Source of the DNA: Monocercomonoides exilis PA203
Lineage: Eukaryota; Protista; Preaxostyla
Length of the DNA stretch: 64,000 bases
Direction: 5' to 3'
Assembly (NCBI GenBank): GCA_001643675.2
Contig: LSRY02000017.1
Location: forward strand, 496,001 to 560,000
Notes under the pieces: model-generated
The model's database searches: none
Told to the model about the DNA's origin: nothing
What the model saw: the letters and a program-made list of their open reading frames with translations, nothing else
Translations under genes and position numbers: made by a program
Shown: positions 2,854 through 32,854 of the stretch, piece by piece
Layout: every line of letters begins with the position of its first letter
How positions within the stretch are numbered: the stretch's first letter is position 1

Positions 2854-5800
2854 CTATTTCTTTGCAAATGGATTTCTTGGGCGAACAGGCTTTGGAGGCT
2901 GCTGTTGAACGTCCTTCTCTTGTTTCACTTCTGGTGCATCAAACAGATTTGTTTCTGGCACCTCTTTTGCTTCACTTTCTGATGGAGCAAAAAGAGATGA
3001 AGACGAATCCAAGGAAGAAGAAGAAGATGATGAGAGCAATGTCTCTTTGTCCAAATCCAATGACTCATCAGATGGTTGATGCTCGTTTATATCAACAGTA
3101 GACGATGCTGGAGGATCACCCGAAAGCTGAAGAGACGAAGGAGCATCAGTTTCTTTGTGAGTTTCTGTTGCTTGTGGTTCATCTGTCATATTTCCTTGGT
3201 CCAATTCTTCTTCAAACTCAGGAGCAGAAGCAGACGAAGAAAGCAGCCCTCCGGGTGAAGTAGCAATTTCTGATTCTTTCTTTGAATTTCCTTTTGTCAA
3301 AAGTGTGGATTGTTGTTTTGGTTTTGTTGTTCTTGTTCGTTTTCTTGGCGATGTGACTGCAGAACTTGACTTGTTGAATGGATTAATGATCGAAGGAAGT
3401 GGATCCTCCTCCGAAGATGGTGTTGCCGAAGATGAAGCGTGCTGCTTTGGCTGTACAGATGACGATGAACCATCGAGCGTTGGTTGTTTCAATGTTTTTG
3501 TTTTTGAGATAAATGTGTTCACTTGAGTTTTCATCGCCAGAAAATCACTGAAAATAAGATATTTAAACAATACCAAAAAGTACGCATTAAACAGAAACAT
3601 TAAATCCAATAGAGTTGGACACACTTTCTTAATGTATCATATGCTTTTTTGTTTTGTTCGATTTGTTTTGCTTGCTCAACAATTATCTTTCGAAGTTGAT
3701 CAGTTTCCAAAAGGATATCTTCCTTTTTCAAGCCTCCCAATGCATCACTTTCAATTAGTGATTCTGCAATTGAAGCTTGTTGCTTATCTGATGAAACAAG
3801 TTTGAAAAATAAAAAAATCAAAAAATCAAAAAATCAAAAAATCAAAAAATCAAAAAATCAAAAAATCAAAAAATCAAAAAATCAAAAAATCAAAATATGT
3901 ACAATGATGTTGTCACACCTCCAGCAGCAGATATCCCCGATCCTCCACCAGCCATCATCAACACAGTCTGTGGGTCGCTTGACCCCATTCTGTTACAACC
4001 AAGTTGACGCAGATTGTCGTATTTCTGATCGGGGAATCGAGTTTTCATAAGCAAGTCAATTCGATCTTGCATTGGTTTCGTCTTTGAACGGAAAGCAAGT
4101 GTTCGAACACCTTCAAGTGCAATTCTGTTATATATTGATGACGAAATTTCATAAGCACGTGCTGGTTTTTGAGATGCAAGTGAAAGCTGTAAATAATAAA
4201 TTACAAATATTCAATCAACAATCAGAGACATCGAATGAAACATAGATTGAAAAAAATTAATTAGAGACTTTTTGAAAAAAAAATATACAAACTCCAGCCA
4301 TTTTTACATAATTGGTATCAAGCGATGCTTCCTCATTTCTTATCTGTTTGAGTGTTGGCGCTCTGCTTTTAACGATATCTGCTCCAACCCCAACACTTGC
4401 CTTGTCCATTCCTTTGTTAATGCCTCCACCAACAGATGCATGTAATGGATCAGTTCTCCACCATTTGCCTTCAATTCGATTAACTCCGACAGCTTCAACA
4501 AAGGCTTGTTCTCTGTGTTGAGACATCAATGCCAATTTCAATTCGCCGCGTGCTGCTTCTTCTTCCAAACGAGCAGTTGTTGACTGAGTATCCAAAAAGT
4601 TGAGAGAGAAAGGAATCGAACGAGACGGAAGTACTTTTTCTGTCAGCGGAGGATATCCAATCGAGCGAGGGCATGCAATACACAACACTTCACTTTCTCT
4701 ACATCCATAAATCCAAAGCGACTCAGCTCTGCTTTGCACACTCATTGTCAGATCACAGATTGGTATCCACAAGTCTCCCCATGCTTCAACAAGAATTCTG
4801 ACAATTCCTGATGAGTCGCAAGAGACAAGTGCACCTCCATCAGTAAATCCCAACCATGTTAAATGCGATCCAGCTGAAATCGGAACGCTTCCACTCTTTT
4901 GAGGAGCACCAAATGCGGATGATGGAGAATAGATTTCATAAGTGAGAGATGGTGTGAGTACAGATGATGATGAACCTGATTCATCCGAAGAAGATGAGCC
5001 AGCCTCTTTCTTCATAGAAATAGGAGGAGCTGAGTGATAGCAAACAGCAAATCTTCTATAACCGCCAGCAATACAAACAACAGAAACCGGAACAGAGAAA
5101 CACAGTTTCTGCTGGCCAGTCGGAGTGAATACGCGAATTAGTCCTGTGTTTGTCAGAGCAGCAACATATGAATCACCCACAGCTAATCCAATCACGAAAT
5201 CAGGGCAATTCAAAGTCCAATCGCTTTTATCTGCCCATTTTTGGAAAGCCTTGAAGTATAGAACGTTTTCGCTTGCTAAAAAAAAAAGTTAAAAGGAATT
5301 TTTGTTATTAAATGAATATCAAGCAAAACAAAAATAGTTATTCCCAAAATGTATTTGTGCTCAAACCCTTATCTTTCCCTTTCTTTTGCTGCGTAAGCGA
5401 TAAAGGAGAAAAGAAAGCAGCACCAGAACTTCCCATTGCTGCAAGAGTAAAGTTGTAATGATCCAACATTCTCATATTTGGTATGGCGGAGTCAGTGAAT
5501 TCTATCTCAACGGTCGAGTCGAATTCAGAGATTTTTGTTGTCATTATGTGTCCTCGTGGAGTGCATGCGAGAAGACGCTTGCTCGAATCAAAGGCAGCTT
5601 CGGTTGAACCAGGCTGGAATGGCTGCTGAATGGAGTAGACTAAATGGAGTGATTAATTAATTAATAAAAATTTGTTTGATAATACAGAAATCACAAACAA
5701 ATTTAAAAAGATTTTAAAAGGTAATAATAATTTCATTCAAAGTTAAAAAAATATAGATGTAGTTTAAACAAACTATCGCTATAAGGAATGAATTGAGTTG

Positions 5801-9973: not shown

Positions 9974-12010
9974 TTAATCAACCTCTTCGATCTTTGGACC
10001 AGAAGAAGGTGCAGAGTTGGAACTATTTCCACTGCTTGGTGCACCTCCCATAGGCATTCCTCCCATTCCGCCCATTCCAGGCATGCCACCCATAGGCATC
10101 CCACCCATTCCAGGCATACCGCCCATGGGCATATTTGGCATTCCTCCAGCTGCACCAGCTCCTCCTGCCTGATATGCTTTCATCATGATTGGTTGAGACA
10201 CATCTTCCAATTCTTTCTGCTTCTTCTCATATTCCTCTTTTGGTAAATCAGTGCTTCCACGGATTGATTCCAACCATTCAATAGTTTCGTTAACTTTGGT
10301 TTCAAGTGTTTTCTTATCGTTATCATCGATCTGTAATTTTCCTTCTTTGAGTGTATTTCTCAGAGAGAATGCAAGTCCTTCGAGTCCATTTCTTGCTTCA
10401 ATTGTTTCTTTGACTTTTTCGTCTTCAGCCTTGAATTTCTCTGCTTCAGCAACCATTCTATCAACCTCTGATTGACTCAGTCTTCCTTTATCATTTGTGA
10501 TGGTGATTTTCTCGTGTCTACCGGTAGCTTTATCCTCAGCAGACACTTGAAGAATACCATTTGCATCAATGTCAAACTTAACCTCAATTTTTGGAACTCC
10601 TCTTGGAGCAGGAGCAATACCATCCAATTTGAATGTGCCCAAAAGATTGTTTTGTCTTGTCATCTGCCTTTCTCCTTCATAAACTTTTATAACAACAGAT
10701 GTTTGATTGTCGCTGTATGTTGTGAAATCCTCTGATTTTCCACATGGAATTGGTGAGTTTCTCTTGATCAAAACACACATGACACCACCTGCGGTTTCAA
10801 GTCCAAGTGACAATGGTGCAACATCAATCAACAAAAGATCGTCTCCTTTTGATCCAATGGTTCCTTTCAAAATTGCAGCTTGAACAGCAGCACCATAAGC
10901 AACGGCTTCATCAGGGTTGATGGATTTGCACAATTCTTTTCCTCCAAATCTATCACGAATCAATTGTTGGATGCGAGGAACACGAGTTGAACCTCCGACC
11001 AAAACGATTTCATTGATTTGTGATTTGTCCAATTTTGAGTCCAGCATCGCACGATCCAACGGTTCCAGGCATTTTCTGAATTGTGATTCGCACAATTGTT
11101 CGAATTTTGCACGAGTAATCACGGCGTTGAAATCAAGTCCTTCAAAGAGAGAATCGATTTCAATTGTTGCTTGTGTTGAAGTTGAAAGTGCTCTCTTTGC
11201 ACGTTCGCAAGCAGTTCTCAAACGACCGACTGAGCGGGAGTTGCCCATCATATCTTTCTTGTATTTTCTCTTGAATTCATCTGCCATGTAGTGAGTCAAG
11301 ATGTTGTCGAGATCTTCACCACCACAATGAATATCTCCAGCTGTGGCTTTCACTTCAAAGACACCAGAATCCAAGCACAAAATTGAGACATCAAGGGTCC
11401 CCCCTCCGTAATCGAAAATGAGAACATTCAATTCAGTGTCTTTCTTCTTGTCTAGACCATATGCAATTGCAGATGCTGTTGGTTCGTTGATGATTCTGAG
11501 CACATTCATTCCAGCAATTGTTCCAGCATCCTTTGTAGCCTGACGTTGGCTATCGTTGAAATAAGCTGGGCAAGTCACAACAGCTTCTGTGACTTTATGT
11601 CCAAGATAAGCTTCAGAAATTTCCTTCATCTTTGAGAGCACCATGGAGCTAATTTCTTCTGGCGAAAATTCTTTTGTTTCACCTTTGTACTTGACCTGAT
11701 ACATTGGCTTTCCGTCTTTCTCAATGACTTTGAATGGCCAATGCTTGATATCGTTCTGAATTTCGGAATCTGAGAAACGACGTCCAATCATTCTTTTGCT
11801 ATCAAAGAGAGAGTTTTCTGGGTTCATGTTTCCTTGGTTCTTTGCAGCATCACCAATCAAACGCTCCGTTGGAGTGAAAGCAACCCAGGATGGAGTCGTT
11901 CTATTTCCTTGATCATTTGGGATGATCTCAACAGTTTCGTTTCTCCACACACCAACGCATGAATATGTTGTTCCAAGATCAATTCCGACAGCTGTAGTTG
12001 CTGCACACAT
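9974..12010 (-). CDS. HSP70: Cytosolic Hsp70, intronless
   Basis: [33 protein letters not shown] repeats and C-terminal EEVD. Confidence 0.99.
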
Positions 12011-16292: not shown

Positions 16293-16930
16293 ATGGAGAA
16301 AGCTGAAATTGCAGAAATAATTTCTGAAATTCGAGTAGCTTTTTCTCTTTTTGACACAGATGGTGATGGAGTAATTTTGACAAAAGAATTGCGACAAAGT
16401 ATGTCTCACATTTGTGCATATTTATTATTTGAAAATTTTCATCTATACTTTTTTATTCAATCATCATCGTAGTTATTCGTGCTTTAGGAATTAATCCAAC
16501 AGAAAAAGAAATGAATGAAATGGAACATATTTGTGATCCAAAAGACGAAGGCGCTGTAACATTTCCAACAGTTTTGGAAATGCTTAAGCCGAGATTACTC
16601 TATATCAAAGAAGAAGACTTGAAACAGGAAATATTTGAAGAATTTGACAAAAATGAAGATGGATTTATAAATGTAACAGATCTATATCAAGTTTGAATTA
16701 TCTTTCTTTGAATGTCTTGCAGAGAAGCATTATTTTTATGAAGGTTATGAAAGAATTAGGAGAAGAATTAACCCAAGAAGAACTTCAATTTATGATCCAA
16801 CAAGCAGGTTTGGAAAATAACTTTTAAGCGAATTTATTATTTTCTTCTTTAATTTCATGAATTAGCTGGTGGCAAAGATGTGCAGAAAATTGATAAAAAT
16901 ATGTTCTTAAAAATGGTGAAAGATTGGTGA
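16293..16930 (+). CDS. Calmodulin/centrin-like EF-hand protein (4 exons)
   Basis: [37 protein letters not shown]...IFEEFDKNEDGFINVTDL...ELGEELTQEELQFMI. EF2 and EF4 are degenerate. Confidence 0.88.
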
Positions 16931-17307: not shown

Positions 17308-18597
17308 CTACAAAGGAAGAACTCGTGGTTTCTTTGCATTGAGCAGATGCTCCATAACTGCGGCTGGATCTTTAAACTTGCTTGTGATGATCATTGAAGC
17401 AATAACGTATGGCTTGTGGGATGCTTCCTTGTAAGTGTCAATACGATATCTGTCAAAGACAGATGACTGGACTTCTCCTTCTTTGCAGGAGACACCTGTG
17501 ATATCAGCAGGCAGGCAGTGCATGTAAAGGGCTTTTCCGTCTTTTGTGAGTTTCATTTTCTCTTCTGTGCATTCCCACGAAGTGAAACGAGCATTCATTG
17601 CAAGAGCACGTTTTTCCAATTCCTTTTGCTCTGGACCTTCACGGCTTGGAAGCTTGACTCTTTCTTGCATGATTTCCAATGGAGCCCATGATTTTGGATA
17701 AACAACATCAGCGTCTTTGAAGGCTTCTTCCATTGTCTTTACAATAGTCAATGACCCTCCTCCTTCAGCAGCTCCTTTCTTTCCAGCATCAATAATCGGA
17801 GGAAGAAGATCGTAGCCTTCTGGATGCGCAAGGACAACATCCATTCCAAATCTTGGAAGAAGAGCGATGATTCCTTGTGGAACAGACAATGGTTTTCCAT
17901 AGCTTGGAGAATATGCCCATGTCATTGCGATTTTCTTTCCTTTCAGATTTTCAACTCCACCAAAGTGCTTGATGAGATGAACAAGATCTGCCATTGCCTG
18001 TGTTGGATGATCTTCATCGCATTGCAAATTGACAAGGCATGGGCGTCTTGGAAGAACACCTAATTCATGACCTTCTTTCACAGCATCTGCAACGTCAACT
18101 TGATATTTATGACCTTGTCCCAACCATTTATCATCACGAATTCCAATAACTTCTGTCAAGAATGAGATCATGTTTGCTGTTTCACGAACTGTTTCACCGT
18201 GAGCAATTTGGGATTTTCCTTCATCCAAATCAGAAATGTCCAATCCAAGGAGAGTTGCTGCAAATGAGAATGAGAAACGAGTCTAACGTTGAAAACAATA
18301 AAATAAAATTTGAAATTATAAAAATTTCAAAAGTTTGCATTAAATATTTCAAACTCTTGTAGAGTTATCACGAAAGACTGAAGCTGCAATTCCACCATCG
18401 AACACTTTGCAAGAAATGTTTGCTCTGTAGAGTTCCTCAAGAATTTCAGCAACAAGAATAACGGTGCGAAGATCGTCAGGAGATTTGTCCCATGTACGAA
18501 GGAAATCTTTCTCGTACAAAGATGGGTGAAGTTTCTTCAATTCATCGATATATTTCTGAGCTGCTTCAATATTCTTAGCGGGATCTGCTGCTGCCAT
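17308..18597 (-). CDS. ygeW: YgeW-type (knotted) carbamoyltransferase, bacterial-like, one intron (18283-18354)
   Basis: The spliced product reads FRDNSTR|TRFSF...LDEGKSQIAHGETVRETANMISF...NLQCDEDHPTQ...WAYSPSYGKPLSVPQG...YPKSWAP...MHCLPADI. These are YgeW signatures, distinct from OTC and ATC. Confidence 0.92.
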
Positions 18598-18836: not shown

Positions 18837-21800
18837 ATGAATAAATACGATATCCTATGCATCCAAGGAGAAGGCATAATTTTATATTATAGTGCAGTTT
18901 ATCTGATATTTCATTAATTTGTTTGCAGGAGCATATGGAGTCGTTTTACGTTGCAGAAACAAGGAAACTGGAGAGCTTGTTGCAGTGAAAAAATTTAAAG
19001 GGGATGGAGGTTAAATCATTTGAAATTATACATATTTTGTATTTATATTTTCAAATTATTGTTCTGATTAAATTAGAATCAGAAATTGATAAAAAAACTA
19101 CTCTCAGAGAAGTTAAAATTCTGAAAATGCTAAATCATATAAATATAGTTAATCTTATAGAAGCTTTCAAGAGAAGAAATAAGCTTTATTTGGTATTTGA
19201 GTTTTGCGAAAAGAATATGCTTGAAATCTTGGAAGAGAGTCCAGATGGATTGGAGCCAGAACTTGTGCGCTTTTATATTTGGCAGCTTTGCAGAGCCTTA
19301 GACTATTGTCATAAAACTGGAATAATTCATCGGGGTTTTGTTGAATTTATTTTTATTTTTAGCTCAACATTATTGACATAAATTTTTATTTTAGATATTA
19401 AGCCAGAAAATTTACTTGTATGCGCAAATGGGGAACTTAAACTTTGTGATTTTGGTTTGTTTTGCATTTTTCTATTATGTATTTTTGAAATATCAAATTT
19501 TGTTGATTAAATAGGATTTGCACGTTTCATCAGCAATCGAGGAGATTATACGGAATATGTTGCAACTCGCTGGTATCGAGCCCCTGAATTGCTTTTAAGG
19601 TTTTTAATTCATTTTTCTACCGTTCTCTCTTGCTTAAAGAATTTTATTAAACTTAATTTATCTTTTTTAAAATCAAATATTTAACTTTTTGTTTTTAAAT
19701 AAAAAAATTTTTTGAAATCCAAACTTGCCAACATTATTAAAGTACTTCAAATTATACGACAGCTGTTGATATGTGGGCAGTTGGGTGCATCATGGGTGAG
19801 CTTGTTGATGGGCAGCCGATGTTTCCGGGAGAAAGTGAACTGGACCAGTTAAATGTTATAATGAAAGTGATGGGAAATTTAACAAGAGAGCATAAAGAGG
19901 TTTGTTAACATTAACCAGATAGTGTTCTAATTTGGAAAATATCAAACAAATTTATATATATATATATTTTGAAATTGAAATACCTCAACTTATTTTTGAA
20001 ATTTTGAAATTTTTTGTTCATTAAACACAAAATTTCCATTTTCAATTTGTTGTTTTATGATTTTGATTGCACATTTTGCACATTTTTATTATTTATTTTA
20101 TTTTATTTTATTCATTTTTTTCTTTATTGCATATGCTCCCTCAATCCAGCTGTACATGAAGCACCCTTCTTTTTCCTCCCACCAGCTGATTTCTGTGACC
20201 CGCCCCGAGTCACTCGAAAAGAAGTATTTCGCAAAAGTCTCAAAAAGAGCCCTTTCCTTCATGAAAGCGCTTATTCGGATGGACCCTGCGGAAAGAATGA
20301 CTGCAGAGCAGGCACTGCAGCACCCGTTTGTGTTTTTGAATTCGTTTGGTTGTTGTGTTTCATGCTTATTTTATCTCTTTCTTTCTCTTTCTTTCTCTTT
20401 CTTTCTCTTTCTTTCTCTTTCTTTCTCTTTCTTTCTCTTTCTTTCTCTTTCTTTCTTTCTATTTTTCTGTGAAATACAGTTATTTTGAAGGAATGGAGCA
20501 GCTGCATCCGACAATAGCAGCACAAAAGGGGAAGATTATGAATCGCGAGCGATCTGCCCAGAAAGGGAAAGGAGCAAAAGAGAAAGAGAGAGAAAGAGAC
20601 AGAGACAGAGAAAGAGAAAGAGAAGGGGTTAAGACAAAGAGCAGAGATAGAGAGAAGACAAGAGACGAGGATAGAGAAAGAGAAAGAGAAAGGGAGAGAG
20701 AAAGAGAAAGAGAAAGAGAAAGAGACAGAGACAGAGACAGAGAAAGAGAGAAAGGCGATGATAAGAAGAACGGAATGAATGCAGCGCAGGCAGCTGCAGT
20801 GGCTGTGCGCGAAGCTGAACGGCAGCTCACAACAATCTCAATGGCAGCACAAACAACATCAAACATCCCTTCTTTTTCTCCTACTACTACTTCTTCTTCT
20901 TCCTCTTCCTCTTCTTCTTCTTCAATGACTTCTAGCCCTTCTGTTCTTCTGCCTTCACTGGGAATGGGTCGAAGCAATAACAACAACAATGCAAACAACC
21001 CTTCCTCCTCTTCTTCTTCTTCCTCTTCTTCTCTCTTACTCTCCTCTCATTCAACCACCCAGAGTTCTTCGTTCATCGGGATGGCGCCTCTCAATCCGAT
21101 GCCTGGCAGAGAGAAAGAAGACAGCCGAGACAGAAACGAGACCGACAGAGAAAGAGAGCGGCTGAGGAGCAGAGGAGAGGTATATTCGAGGGAAAAAGGG
21201 AGGCTGCAGGTGATTGGATCCTTCGCACAGGGCGAGGAGCAAGGGGAGTTTGGATCGACTTTGCATTCGAATAACTCTATAGGGATGGGTGCTATGCCTT
21301 CTTCACATTCTTCTTCTTCTTCTTCTTCCTCTTCCTCTTTGTCTTTGTCTTCCTCTTCCTCTTCTTCTTCATGTTTGGCACAGACATCGCAAAGGCGCCC
21401 GTTTTCGCCTCTTCCGGTGATTCCTCCGTTTGTAGACAGAAAGAAGCTGAAGGACTTGGCGAAGAAAGGAGAGAGAGAGAAGGAGAAGGAGAAGGAGAGA
21501 GAAAGGGAAAGAGAAAGAGAGAGAGAAAGGGAGAGAGAAAGAGAAAGAGAGGAAGAGCGAATTCGAATGAGAGAAGAAGAAGAGTTCACATACGACGATC
21601 CAGAAGCAGAAAAGATACTTTTAGCAGACCGAATGGAGGAGAAGAGGAGGAGAGAGAAAGAGAGAGAAAGAGAAAGAGAAACAATGATTGCTGTGGGGGG
21701 AGGAGGAGGCAGCGGAATGGGGCTGGGCGAGAAATACGGGGTGAAGAAGAAGATGAGCGAGATAAGCGGAGAAGGGAGAGAAAGAGAGAGGGAGAGGGAG

Positions 21801-25003: not shown

Positions 25004-28000
25004 ATGGTGAGGTGCTCCACCAACATGAAAGCTGCATTCCGTTTTGCTACATTGTTGTTGCTTGTTGTCCACAGCTGCAGCTGCAGAGGCATTGAAGAAA
25101 GACAAATTCAACAAATATGCGATGAGGAGATGCCAAAAGTCGAGATCAACATTTCAGACGAAAAAGGAACGAATAGCAATATTTATTCGATTCGAAGGGA
25201 AGTGATCGGGAATGCAGCTGGCAACCGGCTGTGTTGTGCTGAAACAAGTCTTGTAATCGTCAACAGCTCGTTGTGCGTGAGCCGCCTCACCATGGTGCCT
25301 CTCAGCGGCTTTGCGTTTGTCACTGCCCACAAGCGCTCAGCTGCCACCATTCTCTCCTCTGCCTGCCAAATCCACACACACCACAATCACAATCACAAGC
25401 ACCACCCACTCTTCCTCTCTGCACACAGCTCCCTCTCACTCACGAACTTCTCCCTCCTCATCCCTCAACCGGCCATCCTCTCCTTCCCCTTCTTCTCCAC
25501 CCCAAATTATCTCTTCTCTTCTTCCCACTCCACAATCCCTGCCTCCTTCTTCATCTCCCACTCCTCTTTCTCCTCTTTCGTCCCCCTCCACCAGCCCTTC
25601 CTTTTTTCCCCTTCTTCCTCTCTCCACCCCCAAATCCGCCTCAATCTCCATCTCTCAAGCACGCTCTTCTCCAACATCTCTTCTCTCTCACCACATTTAA
25701 CACGAACACCATTTTCCTCATACTCACCCAATCCATTCTCCACCACAACCACAACCATAACAAACAACGCACACAACTCATTCGCCACAACCACTTCCAT
25801 TTCCAACGCCATGTCAATCCCCTCCTTCTCCATTCGCTCATGCCTCTCTATCCACTCAACTCTCTTCCACCACACCCACAACCCCATCGATGGTTCCATT
25901 CTCCCCTCACTCAACAGCCCATCCACTTCTCTCTCTGCCGTCAACACATCTTTCCTTCGCCAAACACGATCTTCTCCAAATGTTCCAATTGTATATGTTG
26001 GAATTGAAACAGACAGAAAGAGACCAGATAGATTGGATTCGTTTGATGAGAACAGCCATAAATTTGAATGGTGCGAATGGAATGGTTCAACTGGTGGATC
26101 AAATCATGGAGGTGCACTTTATGTTGTTTGCACAAATGCAAATCTTGCAATCACATCTTGTTCGTTTTTCAATTGTTCAAGTGGTGATCATGGCGGAGCG
26201 TTATACTGTAATCGTTCGTTGAAGTTAAACATCTTAAAATCAAATTTCACAAGCTGTACAGCTGCTCATGCAGGAGCAGCTTATGTTGGATATCCACAGT
26301 CTAATTCTGCTTATTCATTCCCAGAAAACAGAGTGGAAAGTTGTTCAATAACAAGCGGAATTGGAAGTGGTTGGTATTTTGCTCTAGCAAATAATCAAAC
26401 AAATTTTCAATTCTTGTTTTCCAAATGCAAGAGTATCTCAAATTCCGGTGGAGATTCAGCTGGCGCTCTTTTATTGGATTGGCCTCCACAAAATAAACCA
26501 AATCAATTTTTGATTGATGATTGCCAATTCATAAATAACAAATTAACAAGTTCATCAGCTTTCAATGGTGGCGCTGGGCTGTGCTGCACAACCACTTTCA
26601 CTTGGATGAGCGGGTTCAAATTCATCACATTTTGTTTCTTCGATGGCAACACTGCAACTAATGGCAGGGGAAATGATGTGTTCTTCAATGGCAATGCAAT
26701 CACTCAATCTCCATTTGAGAATTGTGGATCAACAACCCCAGCTAAAAGAGTGTGGAATAGCAATACAGCTGACAATGCAGTGTACAATGGCTGGCTTCCA
26801 ATCATCAACCAGAACAAAATCGTAGCAAACAACGGGGAAGATATCGATGCCTGTGGCAAAACACAACAAAGCCCATGTGCTACAGTGGAGTATGCCCTTA
26901 GATGCGTTGCTCCCTTCAGCAATGCCTCCCTCTCTCTTCTCATCTCCACTTTCACTCCCACAAAGACTCTCACATTCCGTGCCCCAAATACAAAAATCAC
27001 TGGAAATGGCACAACTACCACAACTATCGCCTCCAGTGGCATTCCCCAACCAACTTCTTCCTCTCCATCATTTTTATCATCCTCTTCACCAGATCCATCT
27101 GCCTCGTCTGCCCTCTTTGCACAAACTCAGGGCTCCCTCACAGTCTCTGCCCTCGCCATCGCCCACAACTCCACTAATCCCATTACCCCCATCCTCTTCC
27201 ACCTCTCCCAAAACTCCCCTTCCCTCAACCTCAATACAACCACCATCACTGGAGTTGCCTCCAATTCAATAAAAACACCCATCTTCTTCCTCACTGCTGG
27301 CTCCCTCGCCCTCAACCACACAGCAATCACAAAACTCATCCTCAACAACCCCAGCATCTTCCATCTCACCTCCCTCATCGCTCCCCTCACCCTCAACTCC
27401 TCCAACATCACCGACATCACCTCCACATCTACCCCCGCAAGCTGTGTCCTCTCCTCTACCACCTCCCCTGTCCTCACTCTCTCCATCACCAACTGCACCA
27501 TGAACAACATCAGCTCATCACAGCTGAACCAACAGGCTGTCACCAATGGAGGATGCATCTCATTCGCCTCATCTGCCTCTGACAATGCATTTTCGGTGAG
27601 CAACGCCACGTTCTCCAGCTGTTGTGTGAGCGAGGATGCGAGTTCCGGAGGAAGAGGCGGAGGGATATATCTGGATTGCAGCCTGAATGAAGAAGGATTT
27701 CAGCTTTCATCAATATCGTTTTCTGGGTGCAGGGCAACAGTCGGGAAGAACATTTTTGTGAAAAGCAGCAATTTGATGAATTGTGTGAATACAGAGCGTT
27801 TTGCAATTGTTAACACAGATTACGTGGAGGATGGAAATGCATTTGTTGGAGAAGATGCGATTTATGGAGAAATGGATCTCCGAGTGTTTCTTGTATCTAT
27901 GAAGTGGATAGTTGTGTCTGTGTCGAAGGATGGGCACGACACATTGGGATGTGGAAGTGAAATATTCCCATGCAAATCACTGAAAAGTGGAATTGACCAC

Positions 28001-31000
28001 ATTGACAGAAGTGAGACAGAAGGAGAAAGGAAAGTGAATGTGAGAGATGAAGGGACAATTGAAGATATTAATTCATTCACAGATACACTTGTGATTGATG
28101 GGTGCTTGAATGAGGATGATGCCATTAAACACAGGCCAATTCATTTTGAAGGGACTATTAATGGAGATTCTGCAGCAACTTCATCTGTTATTTCATCAGC
28201 AGTTTCACTCAGTTTGTATTCTTTAAAGTTACAGATCCCAAGTCAATTTGAGCCAAACATGAATTCGTTGATCTCATCGAGTGGGATTCTTCAACTCAAA
28301 AACTGTTCATTTGAAAACCAATCATCAGATATCATTCAATACTCGTTGATAACCACAACAAGTGGGAGTTGCACATTGAAAGGATGTAGTTTGGTAGATT
28401 CTTCATTTATCATTTCACCACTGGTGATGGCTTCTTCTATTTTGCTTGAAAACAGCAATTTTTCAAATATTGTCAACACAGTCAGCAAAGAAGGAGGCGT
28501 TGCAAAAGTGACATTGAAAGAGAATGAAAAGCTGGAGATCAAATCGACAAATGTTTCATCTTGTTCACTTTTAACAACAAATGGAAAAGGAGGGTTCTTG
28601 TATTTGGATTGTCAAAATTGTTTGAATGAAACACCATTTCTTTTGGAAGGTGTAACGTTTGATAGCAACAAAGCAGATATTGGAAAGAATATGTTCATTT
28701 TGGGAAAGGATTTCAACATTTCCGTAACGAATGACTCATTCAAGTTTGATTATTCATCAATGAAGGATGATGGTAACTTATTTGTTGGAAGTGATGATTT
28801 TCATCAAGAAAAGGATTTATTCATGTTTTTGAGTCCATTCAGCTCAACTGAGATATTTATCTCATCGAATGGATTTGATGTGTCACGTTGTGGAAGTGAA
28901 GAAGAGCCATGCTTCACAATGTGGAAAGGGATGGAAAACATGAAAGAGGGAGATGAAATGAAAACAATACAAATTGAAGGATCAACAATTATTCGAGATT
29001 CATTCAATGTTTCCAATTATCAGATCAAAAAGAATGTGAAGATGGGAGAAGAGAATGTGAAAGCGATATTGAATTTTGAAAAGGCAACTGATAGTCAGCT
29101 AGAATATTTCATAGAAAATGATATTCACCTTGAATTGTCCAACATCCAACTTCAACTGTCAACTGGATTTGACAATTCGGACAAAACGATTATTTCAAAC
29201 AAAAATGGAGCTTTGGTGATAACTGGATGTTCATTCCATTCAGAAGCAGGAGTGAACAATGGATTAGATTGCGTATTTGTGGATGCGATTGGAGGAAGTG
29301 TGGAAGTGGATGATTTGTCGATTGAATCGTGCAATGTTGGAAACAGTATTTTTGTCATTCATGATTCTGGAATTACTTGCCATTTTGTGAATGTTCGAGT
29401 GGATTCGTTAAATGAAAGCGGCGGACGCATTTTATCAATCAAGAAATCTGAATCAGGATTGAAGATAAATGAAGTGGGTGAGGAAATGAGTCTCAACATT
29501 GATAATTCGTCATTTTCAGGAGTGAAGAGAAGTGACAATGGAGCGAGCATTTTGGAATCAAAGAGTGAGAATAAGATTTGTTTGGTTGTGAATGAGAGCA
29601 ACTTTGCAGAAGACAAAGCAGAATTGAGTGAAAAAGGAGGGGCGATATTCTTCACATTGGGTGCATCTGGATCAATGAAAATGATTGACTCAACAATCAG
29701 CCATTGCAGCTGCAGCGACAGCACGGGAAGAGGAGGAGGGGTGTATTTGGCAACAAAGGAAAGAGGAGAATTGGATTTCACATTTATGGGAATGAAGTTC
29801 AGTGCTAACACAGCAAGAGTGGGGGATGACATTTTCATTGAATGTTTCAACATCTTATCCCAGATCAACGAAAGCCAATTTCGATTTGATCTTCGAGAAG
29901 GCCATTACACCAGAATTAATGCGATATATGGAAGAGACGAATGTGATTATCCAATCGATACGGATCTGATTGATTTTGTGACGATCCATCAGAGCGACAC
30001 AATAATTGTGAGCAGTGTGAATGGATCGAATGAGAGGCAATGTGGAACAAACACACTTCCATGTACTTCGATTGATTATGGACTGATGCATCTGACTTCA
30101 GATTTCATGAGTCTGATGTTCATTGTTGAGGAGAGCGTGATTGGTGATGAGGTGAATCTGAAGGAGATGAGTTTGAGTTCGAAGAACAGAGAGATGTGCA
30201 AAGTTAAAGTGAAATCAAACATTGAAAAAACAAGAGAGACATTGATGACAACAGCAGGAACAGTTTCATTGCTGAGAGTGAACTTTGTGTTTGATTCGAA
30301 TTTCAATTCTCGACATGATTCACTGATATCACCAGAGGGAGGGATTCTTGAAATAATGAATTGTTCATTCACCTCAAAACAATCGGCGGATGGAGAAAAT
30401 GCTGATTTTGCAAACATTCCATTTCACATCATTAATATGGCAAAAGGAGAATTACAACTTGATGGATGCATAGCATCAAATCTTATTCTTCAAGAATCTA
30501 CATTATATCTTTCATCACCACTCCCATCAGTCATTGATTCATTAACGATTTGCAATTCAACAATTTCAAAACCTCTATTAGATATTAATGAATTCGGTCA
30601 ATTGAATATGGACAGATTGAAGGTTGAAAATATCACAGTTGAAGGAAATGAAGAATCATTGATATCTTGCCTGTCAATGAAAAAGACAATGCAGTTAACG
30701 AATTGCACAATGGGTAAAGTCAGTTCAAAGACTACAAAAGGTAAATTGATGAAATTGGAGAATTGCACAGATGTGAAAATGGACAGTTGCATTTTTGATG
30801 GGAGCGCAAAGGAAAGAAATGAAAAGAATTTGAATGCAGGAGAAGATGAGATGTGCAAATGGAATGGATCTCTTGTGGATATTGCGAAGAGTTCTGTGAT
30901 GACGAAAGACACAACAATCTCGAATTCACCAGAAGGAGGAATAACAATGAGTGGAGGGGCATTGACCGTTAATGATGGAAGATTTGAGAACAATAATCCA

Positions 31001-32854
31001 TCAATTGAAGGATATCCATCACTGAGAAGAAACATCATATGTTCTGATTCAGGAACATTGAATGTGATGAGTTTGAAAGGAGGAGATGGATTGGAGAGAA
31101 ACACATCACTTTGGATGTTGAATGATGGTTGCAACTTTGAAGGGATTGCTTCTGAGAGAGGTTCATCATTTTTCATTCCTGTATTAGAGAGTGTGGAAGC
31201 AAAAGAAGAGACAGATAGAATGAAGCTGACATTCAAAGGATTGCTTCTTGTTCCATGCAATTTGTCATTCTCAATTGTGAAGAGAAAGGGAGAAGAGAAA
31301 GAGATTGAAAAATACATGTTTGACGGAAATGGATTCTTATCAGAAAAAGAAGCAGAAGGAAGTGCAACAAATGATCTCCTCAGTAGCTGTGGAGACGAAA
31401 TAGAAGTTAGTGTATGCATCCTCTTTGGCAATGCAGAGTCTCCTTCCTCAACAAATCCATTCATTCTGAAGAATGTGAGCGAAACAAAGGAAAACGGAAA
31501 TGAAAGGATTGTTGAAGGAGGAGAAGAACGAAAATCATTTTGGCCGGTCATTGTAATTGCTCTTGTTGTAGTTTTATTGATTGTGCTCATTGTTTCAATA
31601 ATATTGGCTGTTCGATGGAGAAAGCAAAAGAGAAGGACAAAGGAATTGGAGGAGATTGTGAATGATAACATCAGAAAGGATCCGAAGGCGTTTGAGATGG
31701 TGACGATGGATATGTCGCCTGAGGAGCAGTGGAGGAAAGCAGAAAGGGAGGCAGAGAAGAAGAATGATGAAAGGATCAAGAAGAGGGTGTATGAGAAAAG
31801 TTTGGGACACTCGAAGTCATCAGAGCATCTTCTCTCTGAGAGTGGTTCAACAGAATACATTTTGGGGAGAGATTCAGACAAGATTCCTCAATGGGCACTG
31901 GAGAAAGATGAGGAAGAGGAGGATGATACAAGAAAGAGAACACCTTCACCTTCCATTTCGTCTATTTCATCCACTACAACAACTGATTCGGATTCAACAT
32001 TTGTTCAATCAGAAAGTCTGTGCCCCACCACCTCATCGATGTCGAACTTGGTGGATGCAATGGCCTGCTCATCTCCACACGAAAAGTTGATTGTGGATCT
32101 GAGGGATTCGCTGTTCATGCTGTTGCACGTAAGTAACGAGAAGAAAGAGATGGCTATTGGAAGCTTGAAGGAGAGGGAGCAGACAGCTTCCCAAATCCTG
32201 TTCTGGGTGGCCAATTTGGCACTCCACTCGTTTGACGAAATGGAAAACCCACTCCAATCCCTGACCAATCTCAGCCCCCACATTGTGTTGTTATCAGAGC
32301 ATATGGTCATCTGCATTGTGATGCACTCAGATCTTTTATCAGATGACTCAGAATCATCTTCCATCTCTTCATCGACTGTTGTGACATCTGCAAGTGATGA
32401 TGAGGAGGAGGAAGACTCTCTTCCTTCATCAGCGTTTGAGGATGAGAACGATTTCAAAAAAGAGTGTCTGAGGTGGAAGGCGCCAGAGCTTTTGATGAAC
32501 AAGAAGATGGGAGCAACAAAGAAGTCGGTGGTGTTTTCGATTGGGATGATGGCGTGGGAGTGTCTGACGCTTCAGATCCCGTTTGGGGAGTATCCGACAG
32601 AGGTGGCTGGGTCTAAGATTGTGAATGGGGAGAGACCTACATTGGAGGAGTTACAAGCAAACTCATATTTTGAAACCATCAAGAATTGCATTTCTTCATC
32701 AGCAGAAGACCGTCCGTCGCTCACGCAACTGAAGCGTGAGTTCATAAAGCGCTTTCCAGCAGAGATGGTGATTGTAACTATGTCAGATGCAATTGATTTA
32801 GAAAATTCCTCTGAAGAAAAGGAACTGAAAAAAAAGTGGACCTACCAAAATTGA
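25004..32854 (+). CDS. Giant intronless type-I membrane protein (2616 aa): signal peptide, repeated pectin-lyase-like beta-helix modules, TM, degenerate kinase-like tail
   Basis: Signal-like FATLLLLVVHSCSC. GGAL/GGGI/GGAI and FxxN motifs and four V-S-x-x-G-x-D/N...CG....PC caps. TM WPVIVIALVVVLLIVLIVSIILAV followed by RWRK. Kinase C-lobe motifs RWKAPELL, VFSIGMMAWECLT, IPF, GERP, RPSL. Confidence 0.88.
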   Translation: MVRCSTNMKAAFRFATLLLLVVHSCSCRGIEERQIQQICDEEMPKVEINISDEKGTNSNIYSIRREVIGNAAGNRLCCAETSLVIVNSSLCVSRLTMVPLSGFAFVTAHKRSAATILSSACQIHTHHNHNHKHHPLFLSAHSSLSLTNFSLLIPQPAILSFPFFSTPNYLFSSSHSTIPASFFISHSSFSSFVPLHQPFLFSPSSSLHPQIRLNLHLSSTLFSNISSLSPHLTRTPFSSYSPNPFSTTTTTITNNAHNSFATTTSISNAMSIPSFSIRSCLSIHSTLFHHTHNPIDGSILPSLNSPSTSLSAVNTSFLRQTRSSPNVPIVYVGIETDRKRPDRLDSFDENSHKFEWCEWNGSTGGSNHGGALYVVCTNANLAITSCSFFNCSSGDHGGALYCNRSLKLNILKSNFTSCTAAHAGAAYVGYPQSNSAYSFPENRVESCSITSGIGSGWYFALANNQTNFQFLFSKCKSISNSGGDSAGALLLDWPPQNKPNQFLIDDCQFINNKLTSSSAFNGGAGLCCTTTFTWMSGFKFITFCFFDGNTATNGRGNDVFFNGNAITQSPFENCGSTTPAKRVWNSNTADNAVYNGWLPIINQNKIVANNGEDIDACGKTQQSPCATVEYALRCVAPFSNASLSLLISTFTPTKTLTFRAPNTKITGNGTTTTTIASSGIPQPTSSSPSFLSSSSPDPSASSALFAQTQGSLTVSALAIAHNSTNPITPILFHLSQNSPSLNLNTTTITGVASNSIKTPIFFLTAGSLALNHTAITKLILNNPSIFHLTSLIAPLTLNSSNITDITSTSTPASCVLSSTTSPVLTLSITNCTMNNISSSQLNQQAVTNGGCISFASSASDNAFSVSNATFSSCCVSEDASSGGRGGGIYLDCSLNEEGFQLSSISFSGCRATVGKNIFVKSSNLMNCVNTERFAIVNTDYVEDGNAFVGEDAIYGEMDLRVFLVSMKWIVVSVSKDGHDTLGCGSEIFPCKSLKSGIDHIDRSETEGERKVNVRDEGTIEDINSFTDTLVIDGCLNEDDAIKHRPIHFEGTINGDSAATSSVISSAVSLSLYSLKLQIPSQFEPNMNSLISSSGILQLKNCSFENQSSDIIQYSLITTTSGSCTLKGCSLVDSSFIISPLVMASSILLENSNFSNIVNTVSKEGGVAKVTLKENEKLEIKSTNVSSCSLLTTNGKGGFLYLDCQNCLNETPFLLEGVTFDSNKADIGKNMFILGKDFNISVTNDSFKFDYSSMKDDGNLFVGSDDFHQEKDLFMFLSPFSSTEIFISSNGFDVSRCGSEEEPCFTMWKGMENMKEGDEMKTIQIEGSTIIRDSFNVSNYQIKKNVKMGEENVKAILNFEKATDSQLEYFIENDIHLELSNIQLQLSTGFDNSDKTIISNKNGALVITGCSFHSEAGVNNGLDCVFVDAIGGSVEVDDLSIESCNVGNSIFVIHDSGITCHFVNVRVDSLNESGGRILSIKKSESGLKINEVGEEMSLNIDNSSFSGVKRSDNGASILESKSENKICLVVNESNFAEDKAELSEKGGAIFFTLGASGSMKMIDSTISHCSCSDSTGRGGGVYLATKERGELDFTFMGMKFSANTARVGDDIFIECFNILSQINESQFRFDLREGHYTRINAIYGRDECDYPIDTDLIDFVTIHQSDTIIVSSVNGSNERQCGTNTLPCTSIDYGLMHLTSDFMSLMFIVEESVIGDEVNLKEMSLSSKNREMCKVKVKSNIEKTRETLMTTAGTVSLLRVNFVFDSNFNSRHDSLISPEGGILEIMNCSFTSKQSADGENADFANIPFHIINMAKGELQLDGCIASNLILQESTLYLSSPLPSVIDSLTICNSTISKPLLDINEFGQLNMDRLKVENITVEGNEESLISCLSMKKTMQLTNCTMGKVSSKTTKGKLMKLENCTDVKMDSCIFDGSAKERNEKNLNAGEDEMCKWNGSLVDIAKSSVMTKDTTISNSPEGGITMSGGALTVNDGRFENNNPSIEGYPSLRRNIICSDSGTLNVMSLKGGDGLERNTSLWMLNDGCNFEGIASERGSSFFIPVLESVEAKEETDRMKLTFKGLLLVPCNLSFSIVKRKGEEKEIEKYMFDGNGFLSEKEAEGSATNDLLSSCGDEIEVSVCILFGNAESPSSTNPFILKNVSETKENGNERIVEGGEERKSFWPVIVIALVVVLLIVLIVSIILAVRWRKQKRRTKELEEIVNDNIRKDPKAFEMVTMDMSPEEQWRKAEREAEKKNDERIKKRVYEKSLGHSKSSEHLLSESGSTEYILGRDSDKIPQWALEKDEEEEDDTRKRTPSPSISSISSTTTTDSDSTFVQSESLCPTTSSMSNLVDAMACSSPHEKLIVDLRDSLFMLLHVSNEKKEMAIGSLKEREQTASQILFWVANLALHSFDEMENPLQSLTNLSPHIVLLSEHMVICIVMHSDLLSDDSESSSISSSTVVTSASDDEEEEDSLPSSAFEDENDFKKECLRWKAPELLMNKKMGATKKSVVFSIGMMAWECLTLQIPFGEYPTEVAGSKIVNGERPTLEELQANSYFETIKNCISSSAEDRPSLTQLKREFIKRFPAEMVIVTMSDAIDLENSSEEKELKKKWTYQN

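Follow-up and report, generated by a model that had tools for sequence, protein, structure and literature searches.

In the oxymonad Monocercomonoides exilis PA203 (Preaxostyla), a two-exon gene is, on the evidence of its sequence, a true bacterial-type YgeW, and its identity as an ornithine transcarbamylase (OTC) is rejected. It stems from one ancient bacterial transfer, which took place before the split of Preaxostyla (oxymonads and Paratrimastix). The encoded enzyme quite probably works in the catabolic direction and yields ATP, and the balance is slightly in favour of a substrate that derives from urate. Taking the data as a whole, we lean towards an ancient YgeW that acts catabolically on 2,3-diureidopropanoate delivered by a hybrid and dispersed urate pathway, with ATP made through carbamate kinase. 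We infer the direction of the reaction, its substrate and which enzymes open this route with its two initial reactions and close it with the final one.

Gene structure and family identity

The window, a stretch of 64,000 nucleotides, corresponds to positions 496001-560000 of contig C11 in an assembly of 82.3 Mb and 101 contigs. The features of the gene and of its surroundings are collected in Table 1. Exon 1 ends in D-N-S-T-R at position 18355, and the intron sits between R81 and T82, splitting S79-T80-R81/T82-R83 of the SxRT carbamoyl-phosphate motif exactly as had been noticed from the letters of the DNA. Joining the two exons in a script gave a translation identical, letter for letter, to a database protein of 405 amino acids, hereafter P0001, that GenBank names 'aspartate/ornithine carbamoyltransferase family protein [Monocercomonoides exilis]'. 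Splicing and expression of the gene in M. exilis are predicted on the basis of this GenBank protein model. The exons have a GC content of 42% with a GC3 of 32%, resembling six other coding stretches of M. exilis, and a WD40 protein gene is found among the eukaryotic neighbours in addition to those listed. The flanking Hsp70, WD40, EF-hand and kinase genes, the host-like composition and the intron confirm the earlier view that the gene lies among eukaryotic genes and is not contamination.

Table 1. Positions, in the window, of the M. exilis YgeW gene, its motifs and its neighbours
Feature	Positions	Strand	Remarks
YgeW gene, whole	17308-18597	minus	two exons and one intron
Exon 1, residues 1-81 (81 codons)	18355-18597	minus	residues 1-81 of P0001; ATG at 18597-18595
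Spliceosomal GT-AG intron	18283-18354	minus	72 nt, GTTTGA...GTTAG, 17% GC, phase 0
Exon 2, residues 82-405 (324 codons) and stop	17308-18282	minus	opens with T-R-F-S-F; TAG at 17308-17310
HPTQ (H173-Q176), HPxQ carbamoyl-phosphate motif	17998-18009	minus	invariant in the YgeW alignment; definition in PMC4581275
Proline-rich loop region W203-Q217, WAYSPSYGKPLSVPQ	17875-17919	minus	invariant in the YgeW alignment; signature in PMC4581275
HCLP (H336-P339), HxLP carbamoyl-phosphate motif	17509-17520	minus	invariant in the YgeW alignment
Intron-split EF-hand protein gene, exons	16511-16827	plus	eukaryotic context
Intron-split Ser/Thr protein kinase, first exons	18930-19381	plus	eukaryotic context; start approximate
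Hsp70	9977-12010		eukaryotic context

Profile searches were run with each exon separately, and P0001 was used for later whole-protein searches. The NCBIfam YgeW equivalog model NF005538 (cut-off 453) is matched by exon 1 over its positions 4-73, with 76.6 bits, and by exon 2 over 74-395, with 550 bits; the YgeW match is thus unbroken across the intron. Exon 2 also scores 532 bits on the YgeW model TIGR03316. P0001 reaches 645.7 bits on NF005538 and 621.8 bits on TIGR03316 (cut-off 500), and besides the YgeW models no family profile attains an E value of 1e-40 with it. Pfam goes no further than the generic domains OTCace_N and OTCace, and a feature search of the ESM Atlas returned the YgeW assignment once more. 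The solved structures closest to exon 2 are the YgeW proteins (YTCase) of Enterococcus faecalis (2YFK, 475 bits) and Escherichia coli (3Q98, 470 bits), with about 70% identity, followed by N-acetylornithine and ornithine transcarbamylases at no more than 66 bits.

P0001 aligns over its full length with bacterial YgeW proteins, as well as with 2YFK and 3Q98, and belongs to the same length class as the E. coli and E. faecalis enzymes. An alignment of 12 YgeWs (those of M. exilis, Blattamonas and Paratrimastix together with nine from bacteria) has more than 150 invariant columns, including STRT (79-82), HPTQ, HCLP and the proline-rich loop, all of which the E. coli and E. faecalis proteins share. 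The carbamoyl-phosphate motifs SxRT, HPxQ and HxLP and the proline-rich loop of knotted transcarbamylases were defined previously (PMC4581275), and the M. exilis protein would accordingly be classed in the knotted YgeW group. Besides this loop, the knotted YTCase fold is typified by extensions at both the N- and the C-terminal side and in the 240s loop, with which the end-to-end alignments of P0001 are consistent. These scores and invariant motifs bear out the YgeW-specific identity proposed in the initial annotation.

The OTC equivalog model TIGR00658 gives exon 2 only 93.5 bits, far under its cut-off of 280.85. At the position of the ornithine-binding loop (DxxxSMG type) the pairwise alignment shows YPKSWAP in YgeW against DSWMSYG in the genome's own OTC, the two proteins being 26% identical. 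The M. exilis genome has only three loci with an OTCace domain, namely the YgeW gene and two others on contigs C14 and C29, which encode true OTCs (332-348 bits on OTC models). Both OTCs end in KKMTIE, which is also what the reverse primer used for cloning the OTC in Novak 2016 (PMC5052871) specifies, and hence the OTC of that study is a different gene from YgeW. Enzymes of this kind, which serve the arginine deiminase pathway of metamonads, belong to the same superfamily as YgeW and share with it the phosphorolysis of a ureido compound to carbamoyl phosphate, followed by ATP formation through carbamate kinase. They differ in being unknotted, whereas the M. exilis YgeW is predicted to be knotted, and in the site for the second substrate.

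Age and bacterial origin of the gene

Orthologues lying between eukaryotic genes are found in Blattamonas nauphoetae (79% identical) and Paratrimastix pyriformis (74% identical). Fitting each protein to its own locus by script located a phase-0 GT-AG intron at the identical STR/T place in Blattamonas (50 nt, positions 4238-4287 of locus L036) and in Paratrimastix (53 nt, positions 4265-4317 of L037), whose gene carries three further introns. An intron position common to three genera is most simply read as a single intron gain before oxymonads and paratrimastigids diverged. Other samples contain two short, intronless contigs that encode 85%-identical proteins. One of them ends in a poly(A) tail preceded by AATAAA, which indicates that relatives produce a spliced, polyadenylated YgeW mRNA.

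The phylogeny comprised 92 sequences: 80 named bacterial YgeWs, 11 of eukaryote type and one divergent YgeW-like outgroup. It was built by an IQ-TREE quick search under LG+C20+F+G4, with SH-aLRT as the sole measure of support. Within bacterial YgeW, all 11 sequences of eukaryote type group together in a single clade (SH-aLRT 100), which is divided into a Paratrimastix-type and an oxymonad-type group and adjoins a large group of Bacteroidota, Spirochaetota and Bacillota (support 93-94). The protein thus does not branch with ordinary OTCs and is nested among the 80 bacterial YgeWs. No specific donor emerges from this tree and its root is unsure, because bacterial YgeWs are uniformly 58-67% identical to the M. 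exilis protein and a very long branch (8.86) leads to the outgroup.

Lateral transfer from bacteria into what is now a eukaryotic genome, as first suggested, is upheld by the nested clade and by the spliceosomal intron. To read the transfer as an adaptation of a gut protist proves too narrow: the free-living P. pyriformis has the gene with the same intron, so the transfer is older than the gut life of oxymonads.

The bacterial urate pathway and partner genes in M. exilis

The anaerobic pathway of urate breakdown in bacteria was reconstituted by two studies in 2025. XdhD/DOPDH reduces urate to 2,8-dioxopurine, whose ring is reduced by YgfK or, in some species, by UacX and then opened by the amidohydrolase SsnA. 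Opening of the hydantoin by HyuA yields 2,3-diureidopropanoate, which loses one ureido group through phosphorolysis by YgeW and the other through hydrolysis by YgeY; in the last step the diaminopropionate ammonia-lyase YgeX forms pyruvate. YgeW coupled to the carbamate kinase YqeA yields ATP. In the published work that we found, phosphorolysis of 2,3-diureidopropanoate to carbamoyl phosphate is described for E. coli YgeW only, and a 2025 review states that the reductive urate pathway is confined to anaerobic bacteria (PMC12990295). Enterococcus caccae has the full cluster, in the order ssnA-ygfK-hyuA-ygeX-ygeY-ygeW-carbamate kinase-permease-xdhC-selenium XDH (xanthine dehydrogenase). Within 10 kb of 80 bacterial YgeW loci, an M20 hydrolase of YgeY type is the most frequent partner (49 of 80), followed by XDH-like genes (37), carbamate kinase (25), SsnA-like genes (24) and YgeX (19). 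The 2025 papers and the E. caccae cluster agree with the statement of the initial annotation that YgeW is part of a bacterial cluster for anaerobic urate use in which carbamate kinase provides ATP.

Several such partners were found in the M. exilis genome. Carbamate kinase is encoded by a single two-exon gene on contig C47 (212 and 151 bits on arcC). SsnA is present at two loci, on C6 and C68, whose DNA is 93% identical; the protein (P0121) scores 512.9 bits on its family model (cut-off 444), the next family giving 235. The SsnAs of M. exilis, Blattamonas, Trimastix marina, an EukProt transcript and Anaeramoeba flamelloides group in one eukaryotic clade (FastTree, support 99) among sequences named Chloroflexota/Anaerolineae, a placement that is provisional in view of long branches.

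A long-form M20 hydrolase is likewise encoded at two loci, on C44 and C61. Its 517-residue protein (P0241) finds YgeY as its best family with 204 bits, under the cut-off of 321, the next family giving 65 bits, while its identity to canonical YgeY is no higher than about 30%. This long form is present in all five sampled Preaxostyla and has bacterial relatives with 62-64% identity. In a deltaproteobacterial metagenome-assembled genome (MAG; locus L038) it directly follows a YgeW-like gene. In an acidobacterial one (locus L125) it lies inside a YgeW-YgeX-YgfK-like-XDH-M20-SsnA cluster, the carbamoyltransferase of which scores 630 bits as YgeW. The long form therefore replaces YgeY in some bacterial clusters. 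The acidobacterial locus holds homologues of the M. exilis YgeW (59% identity), M20 hydrolase (62%) and SsnA (42%) side by side. Unlike M. exilis, it also has YgeX, a YgfK-like reductase and bacterial XDH subunits, and it serves here as a comparison, not as an established donor.

The candidates for the remaining steps are more distant. Three XDH genes are of eukaryote type; the two that were scanned score 603-607 bits on xdhB, 137-224 bits on the model of selenium-dependent XDH and 98-157 bits on the XdhD-type model, and no urate reductase of the selenium-type XdhD/DOPDH was found in the genome. YgfK was not found either, the genome having two proteins of the dihydropyrimidine dehydrogenase (DPD) type (992 and 951 amino acids) with only the central domain in common with YgfK. 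The sole cyclic amidohydrolase is a multi-exon dihydropyrimidinase-like gene on C54, whose exons together reach about 164 bits, the HyuA cut-off being 393; in two exons the identity to Enterococcus HyuA is 32-41%. The best NCBI match of this gene is a Chloroflexi protein according to the supplement of Novak et al. 2023. YgeX was not found in the genome: the best match, with 47 bits (cut-off 532), is a threonine ammonia-lyase (467 bits). A search for uricase, backed by a valid control, gave no match, and neither did one for allantoicase, where the control was uninformative. No match to an NCS2 purine permease was obtained with one Enterococcus query, which does not imply absence.

Partner enzymes do exist in M. 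exilis, with SsnA, carbamate kinase, XDH and an M20 hydrolase that is YgeY-like below the model cut-off all present, YgeX not found and HyuA represented by a distant candidate only. Given also the position in the tree, neither of the two outcomes that the initial annotation had named as refuting its view came about. Unlike the YgeW genes of E. coli and E. faecalis, the M. exilis gene is nuclear, split by a spliceosomal intron and outside any operon, and its partners are dispersed over different contigs. Compared with the bacterial partner set, M. exilis has the long-form M20 hydrolase in place of YgeY, DPD-like proteins in place of YgfK and eukaryote-type XDH in place of the selenium-dependent enzyme.

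Proposed route, alternative readings and significance

In the scenario that we propose, YgeW moved from a bacterium to the ancestor of Preaxostyla, gained the intron in the STRT motif and adopted the composition of its host. It would since have been retained under strong constraint, and it is predicted to be a functional knotted carbamoyltransferase. The protein is 74-79% identical across Preaxostyla and the reading frame is intact. Together with phosphate, YgeW would split off a ureido group of 2,3-diureidopropanoate as carbamoyl phosphate, which the single carbamate kinase, an enzyme that would have to be shared with the arginine deiminase pathway, would use to make ATP as a second substrate-level source besides that pathway. 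Carbamoyl-phosphate synthetase was not found in the genome, and aspartate carbamoyltransferase is the best match of none of the three OTCace-domain genes. Without these two enzymes carbamoyl phosphate could come only from catabolic transcarbamylases or from carbamate kinase running in reverse, a limitation that makes a catabolic, ATP-yielding role the natural one for YgeW.

The substrate may be supplied by a hybrid form of the reductive urate (2,8-dioxopurine) pathway known from bacteria, with its genes scattered. Urate would be made by an XDH of eukaryote type and reduced by a candidate XDH paralogue and a DPD-like reductase, and the two ureido groups would be removed by YgeW and the long-form M20 hydrolase. 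The retention of YgeW, SsnA and the YgeY-like hydrolase, whose homologues occur in one bacterial cluster, favours 2,3-diureidopropanoate as the substrate. Since the upper steps and the last step are without orthologues, the route is either a hybrid that employs eukaryotic paralogues or consists of the lower half only. Judged from the gene content, an ATP-yielding purine route in M. exilis is plausible but incomplete. That a eukaryote runs the anaerobic reductive urate pathway with acquired SsnA, YgeW, M20 hydrolase, hydantoinase-like enzyme and carbamate kinase, complemented by recruited XDH and DPD paralogues, is a tentative proposal to which we grant a little under an even chance. A parallel is offered by the UacY variant of Clostridioides difficile (PMC12507026), which demonstrates that ureido cleavage in the urate pathway is modular and exchangeable between lineages. 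UacY is, however, a hydrolase that wastes the carbamoyl group, whereas M. exilis retains YgeW and carbamate kinase, which would conserve it as ATP.

Should M. exilis possess only the lower half of the pathway, from SsnA or a later step via YgeW and the M20 hydrolase to carbamate kinase, it would feed not on its own urate but on 2,8-dioxopurine, ureidomethylhydantoin or diureidopropanoate that uricolytic bacteria living alongside it release or that it gains by digesting these bacteria. All specific enzymes found do act from SsnA downwards, and the searches for orthologues of urate reductase and YgfK and, with the one query, for a permease of uricolytic type were negative. We nevertheless regard this reading as unlikely, as the three XDH and two DPD-like paralogues could fill the upper steps and YgeW and the M20 hydrolase are kept in the free-living Paratrimastix.

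Still less probable is a place in pyrimidine breakdown, where YgeW would cleave the N-carbamoyl-beta-alanine produced by DPD and dihydropyrimidinase, replacing beta-ureidopropionase and saving the carbamoyl group as ATP. The two DPD-like genes and the dihydropyrimidinase-like gene are compatible with it, as is the supplement of Novak et al. 2023, which lists beta-ureidopropionase for Trimastix and Paratrimastix only, not for oxymonads. Yet Paratrimastix has both beta-ureidopropionase and YgeW, SsnA has no part in pyrimidine breakdown, and we found no published activity of YgeW on N-carbamoyl-beta-alanine. The 58-67% identity to bacterial YgeWs of urate clusters, with invariant substrate loops, also argues against this role.

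The idea that the gene is a third OTC of the arginine deiminase pathway draws on shared OTCace domains and on existing labels. GenBank calls the orthologues from Blattamonas and Paratrimastix 'ornithine transcarbamylase', and three rows for Preaxostyla in the Novak et al. 2023 supplement read 'OTC 2.1.3.3'. Given two true OTC genes, elimination leaves one M. exilis entry for YgeW, and the entry counted there as an OTC, MONOS_603, is probably the YgeW gene. Published metabolic tables thus appear to count YgeW genes as OTC paralogues. The two orthologues in fact score 641 and 636 bits as YgeW; with exon 2 of the M. exilis gene below the OTC cut-off and above that of YgeW, a different loop and low identity to the real OTC, an OTC paralogue is rejected as highly improbable. 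For contamination by bacteria, an artefact of the assembly or a relic in decay, nothing more than high similarity to bacterial proteins could be quoted; these readings are refuted and have next to no probability in view of the eukaryotic splice sites, the intron position common to three genera, the eukaryotic flanks on a contig that spans at least 560 kb, the host-like composition and the intact, conserved frame.

The YgeW family and gene transfer into anaerobic protists were already known. A full-text literature search found no paper tying Monocercomonoides or Preaxostyla to YgeW, SsnA or uric acid, the M. exilis SsnA gene appearing only under an automatic name in a published supplement. What is new is that YgeW has eukaryotic members, that the OTC label is corrected and that a pathway held to be bacterial gains a eukaryotic version open to testing. 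The annotation of the Blattamonas and Paratrimastix proteins is corrected from OTC to YgeW, and the same intron in a catalytic motif, marking a single ancient acquisition, makes this a clean, dated case of gene transfer. With YgeW and SsnA, the most diagnostic enzymes, and a YgeY-like hydrolase conserved in Preaxostyla, the statement that the reductive urate pathway occurs in bacteria only (PMC12990295) becomes testable.

For M. exilis itself, YgeW with carbamate kinase would provide a third, purine-fed source of ATP. This organism is the model eukaryote without a mitochondrion, its known ATP sources being extended glycolysis and the arginine deiminase pathway, and uric acid reaches the hindguts of insects, home of many oxymonads. 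If the proposed route is true, it would mean purine-fuelled substrate-level ATP synthesis in oxymonads devoid of mitochondria, and perhaps in other metamonads such as Anaeramoeba.

YgeW proteins of relatives and a bacterial module

The YgeW proteins of Blattamonas nauphoetae and Paratrimastix pyriformis score 641 and 636 bits, respectively, on the YgeW equivalog, whose cut-off is 453 bits. Both are named 'ornithine transcarbamylase' in GenBank, an annotation that, judged from sequence, looks wrong. Two mRNA-like contigs from relatives of M. exilis, L122 and L123, encode YgeW proteins that are 85% identical; both have very short 5' leaders and L123 carries an AATAAA signal and a poly(A) tail. 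In a deltaproteobacterial MAG, the gene of a divergent YgeW-like carbamoyltransferase (341 bits, under the cut-off) overlaps by 4 nt that of a long-form M20 hydrolase, with no further urate-pathway genes within 10 kb of this module.

Coordinates of the features discussed
Feature	Source	Position	Remark
YgeW	B. nauphoetae, locus L036	4001-5262	
YgeW	P. pyriformis, locus L037	4001-5699	
YgeW, mRNA-like contig L123	JGI sample 3300052735	1-1367	
YgeW, mRNA-like contig L122	SRR27243490		
YgeW-like + long-form M20 hydrolase	MAG locus L038	8868-11545	two-gene module
SsnA, two copies	M. exilis assembly	C6:1519223-1521049; C68:43822-45663	93% DNA identity
Long-form M20 hydrolase, two copies	M. exilis assembly	C44:162357-163424; C61:268453-269520	98% DNA identity
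Ornithine carbamoyltransferase (OTC), two copies	M. exilis assembly	C14:1469608; C29:257415	97% DNA identity
Xanthine dehydrogenase/aldehyde oxidase, eukaryote-type	M. exilis assembly	C9:515964; C14:2293374; C60:164121	three genes
Open frame, 2616 aa	window	25004-32854 (+)	downstream of YgeW gene

YgeW and other genes in the M. exilis genome

YgeW and carbamate kinase are each encoded by one gene in the assembly. SsnA, the M20 hydrolase and OTC come as near-identical pairs whose members lie on separate contigs, and the DNA match of the M20 hydrolase and OTC pairs is confined mostly to the coding part. Recent duplication could account for these copies, or they could be alleles that the assembly left uncollapsed. 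M. exilis, an anaerobe in which no uricase was found, has three xanthine dehydrogenase/aldehyde oxidase genes, two sharing 86% DNA identity and the third divergent. The carbamoyl-phosphate synthetase large subunit (TIGR01369) was not found in the whole genome, while the control matched 14/14 control genomes. No aspartate carbamoyltransferase turned up among the three OTCace-domain loci of the assembly. The very long frame near the YgeW gene was labelled a mosaic ectodomain in the initial annotation, a putative assignment.

SsnA in other anaerobic eukaryotes

The SsnA homologues of Anaeramoeba flamelloides (P0198) and Trimastix marina (P0126) cluster with oxymonad SsnAs (FastTree support 99, on long branches). 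This grouping hints that SsnA was acquired before Preaxostyla or passed between eukaryotes.
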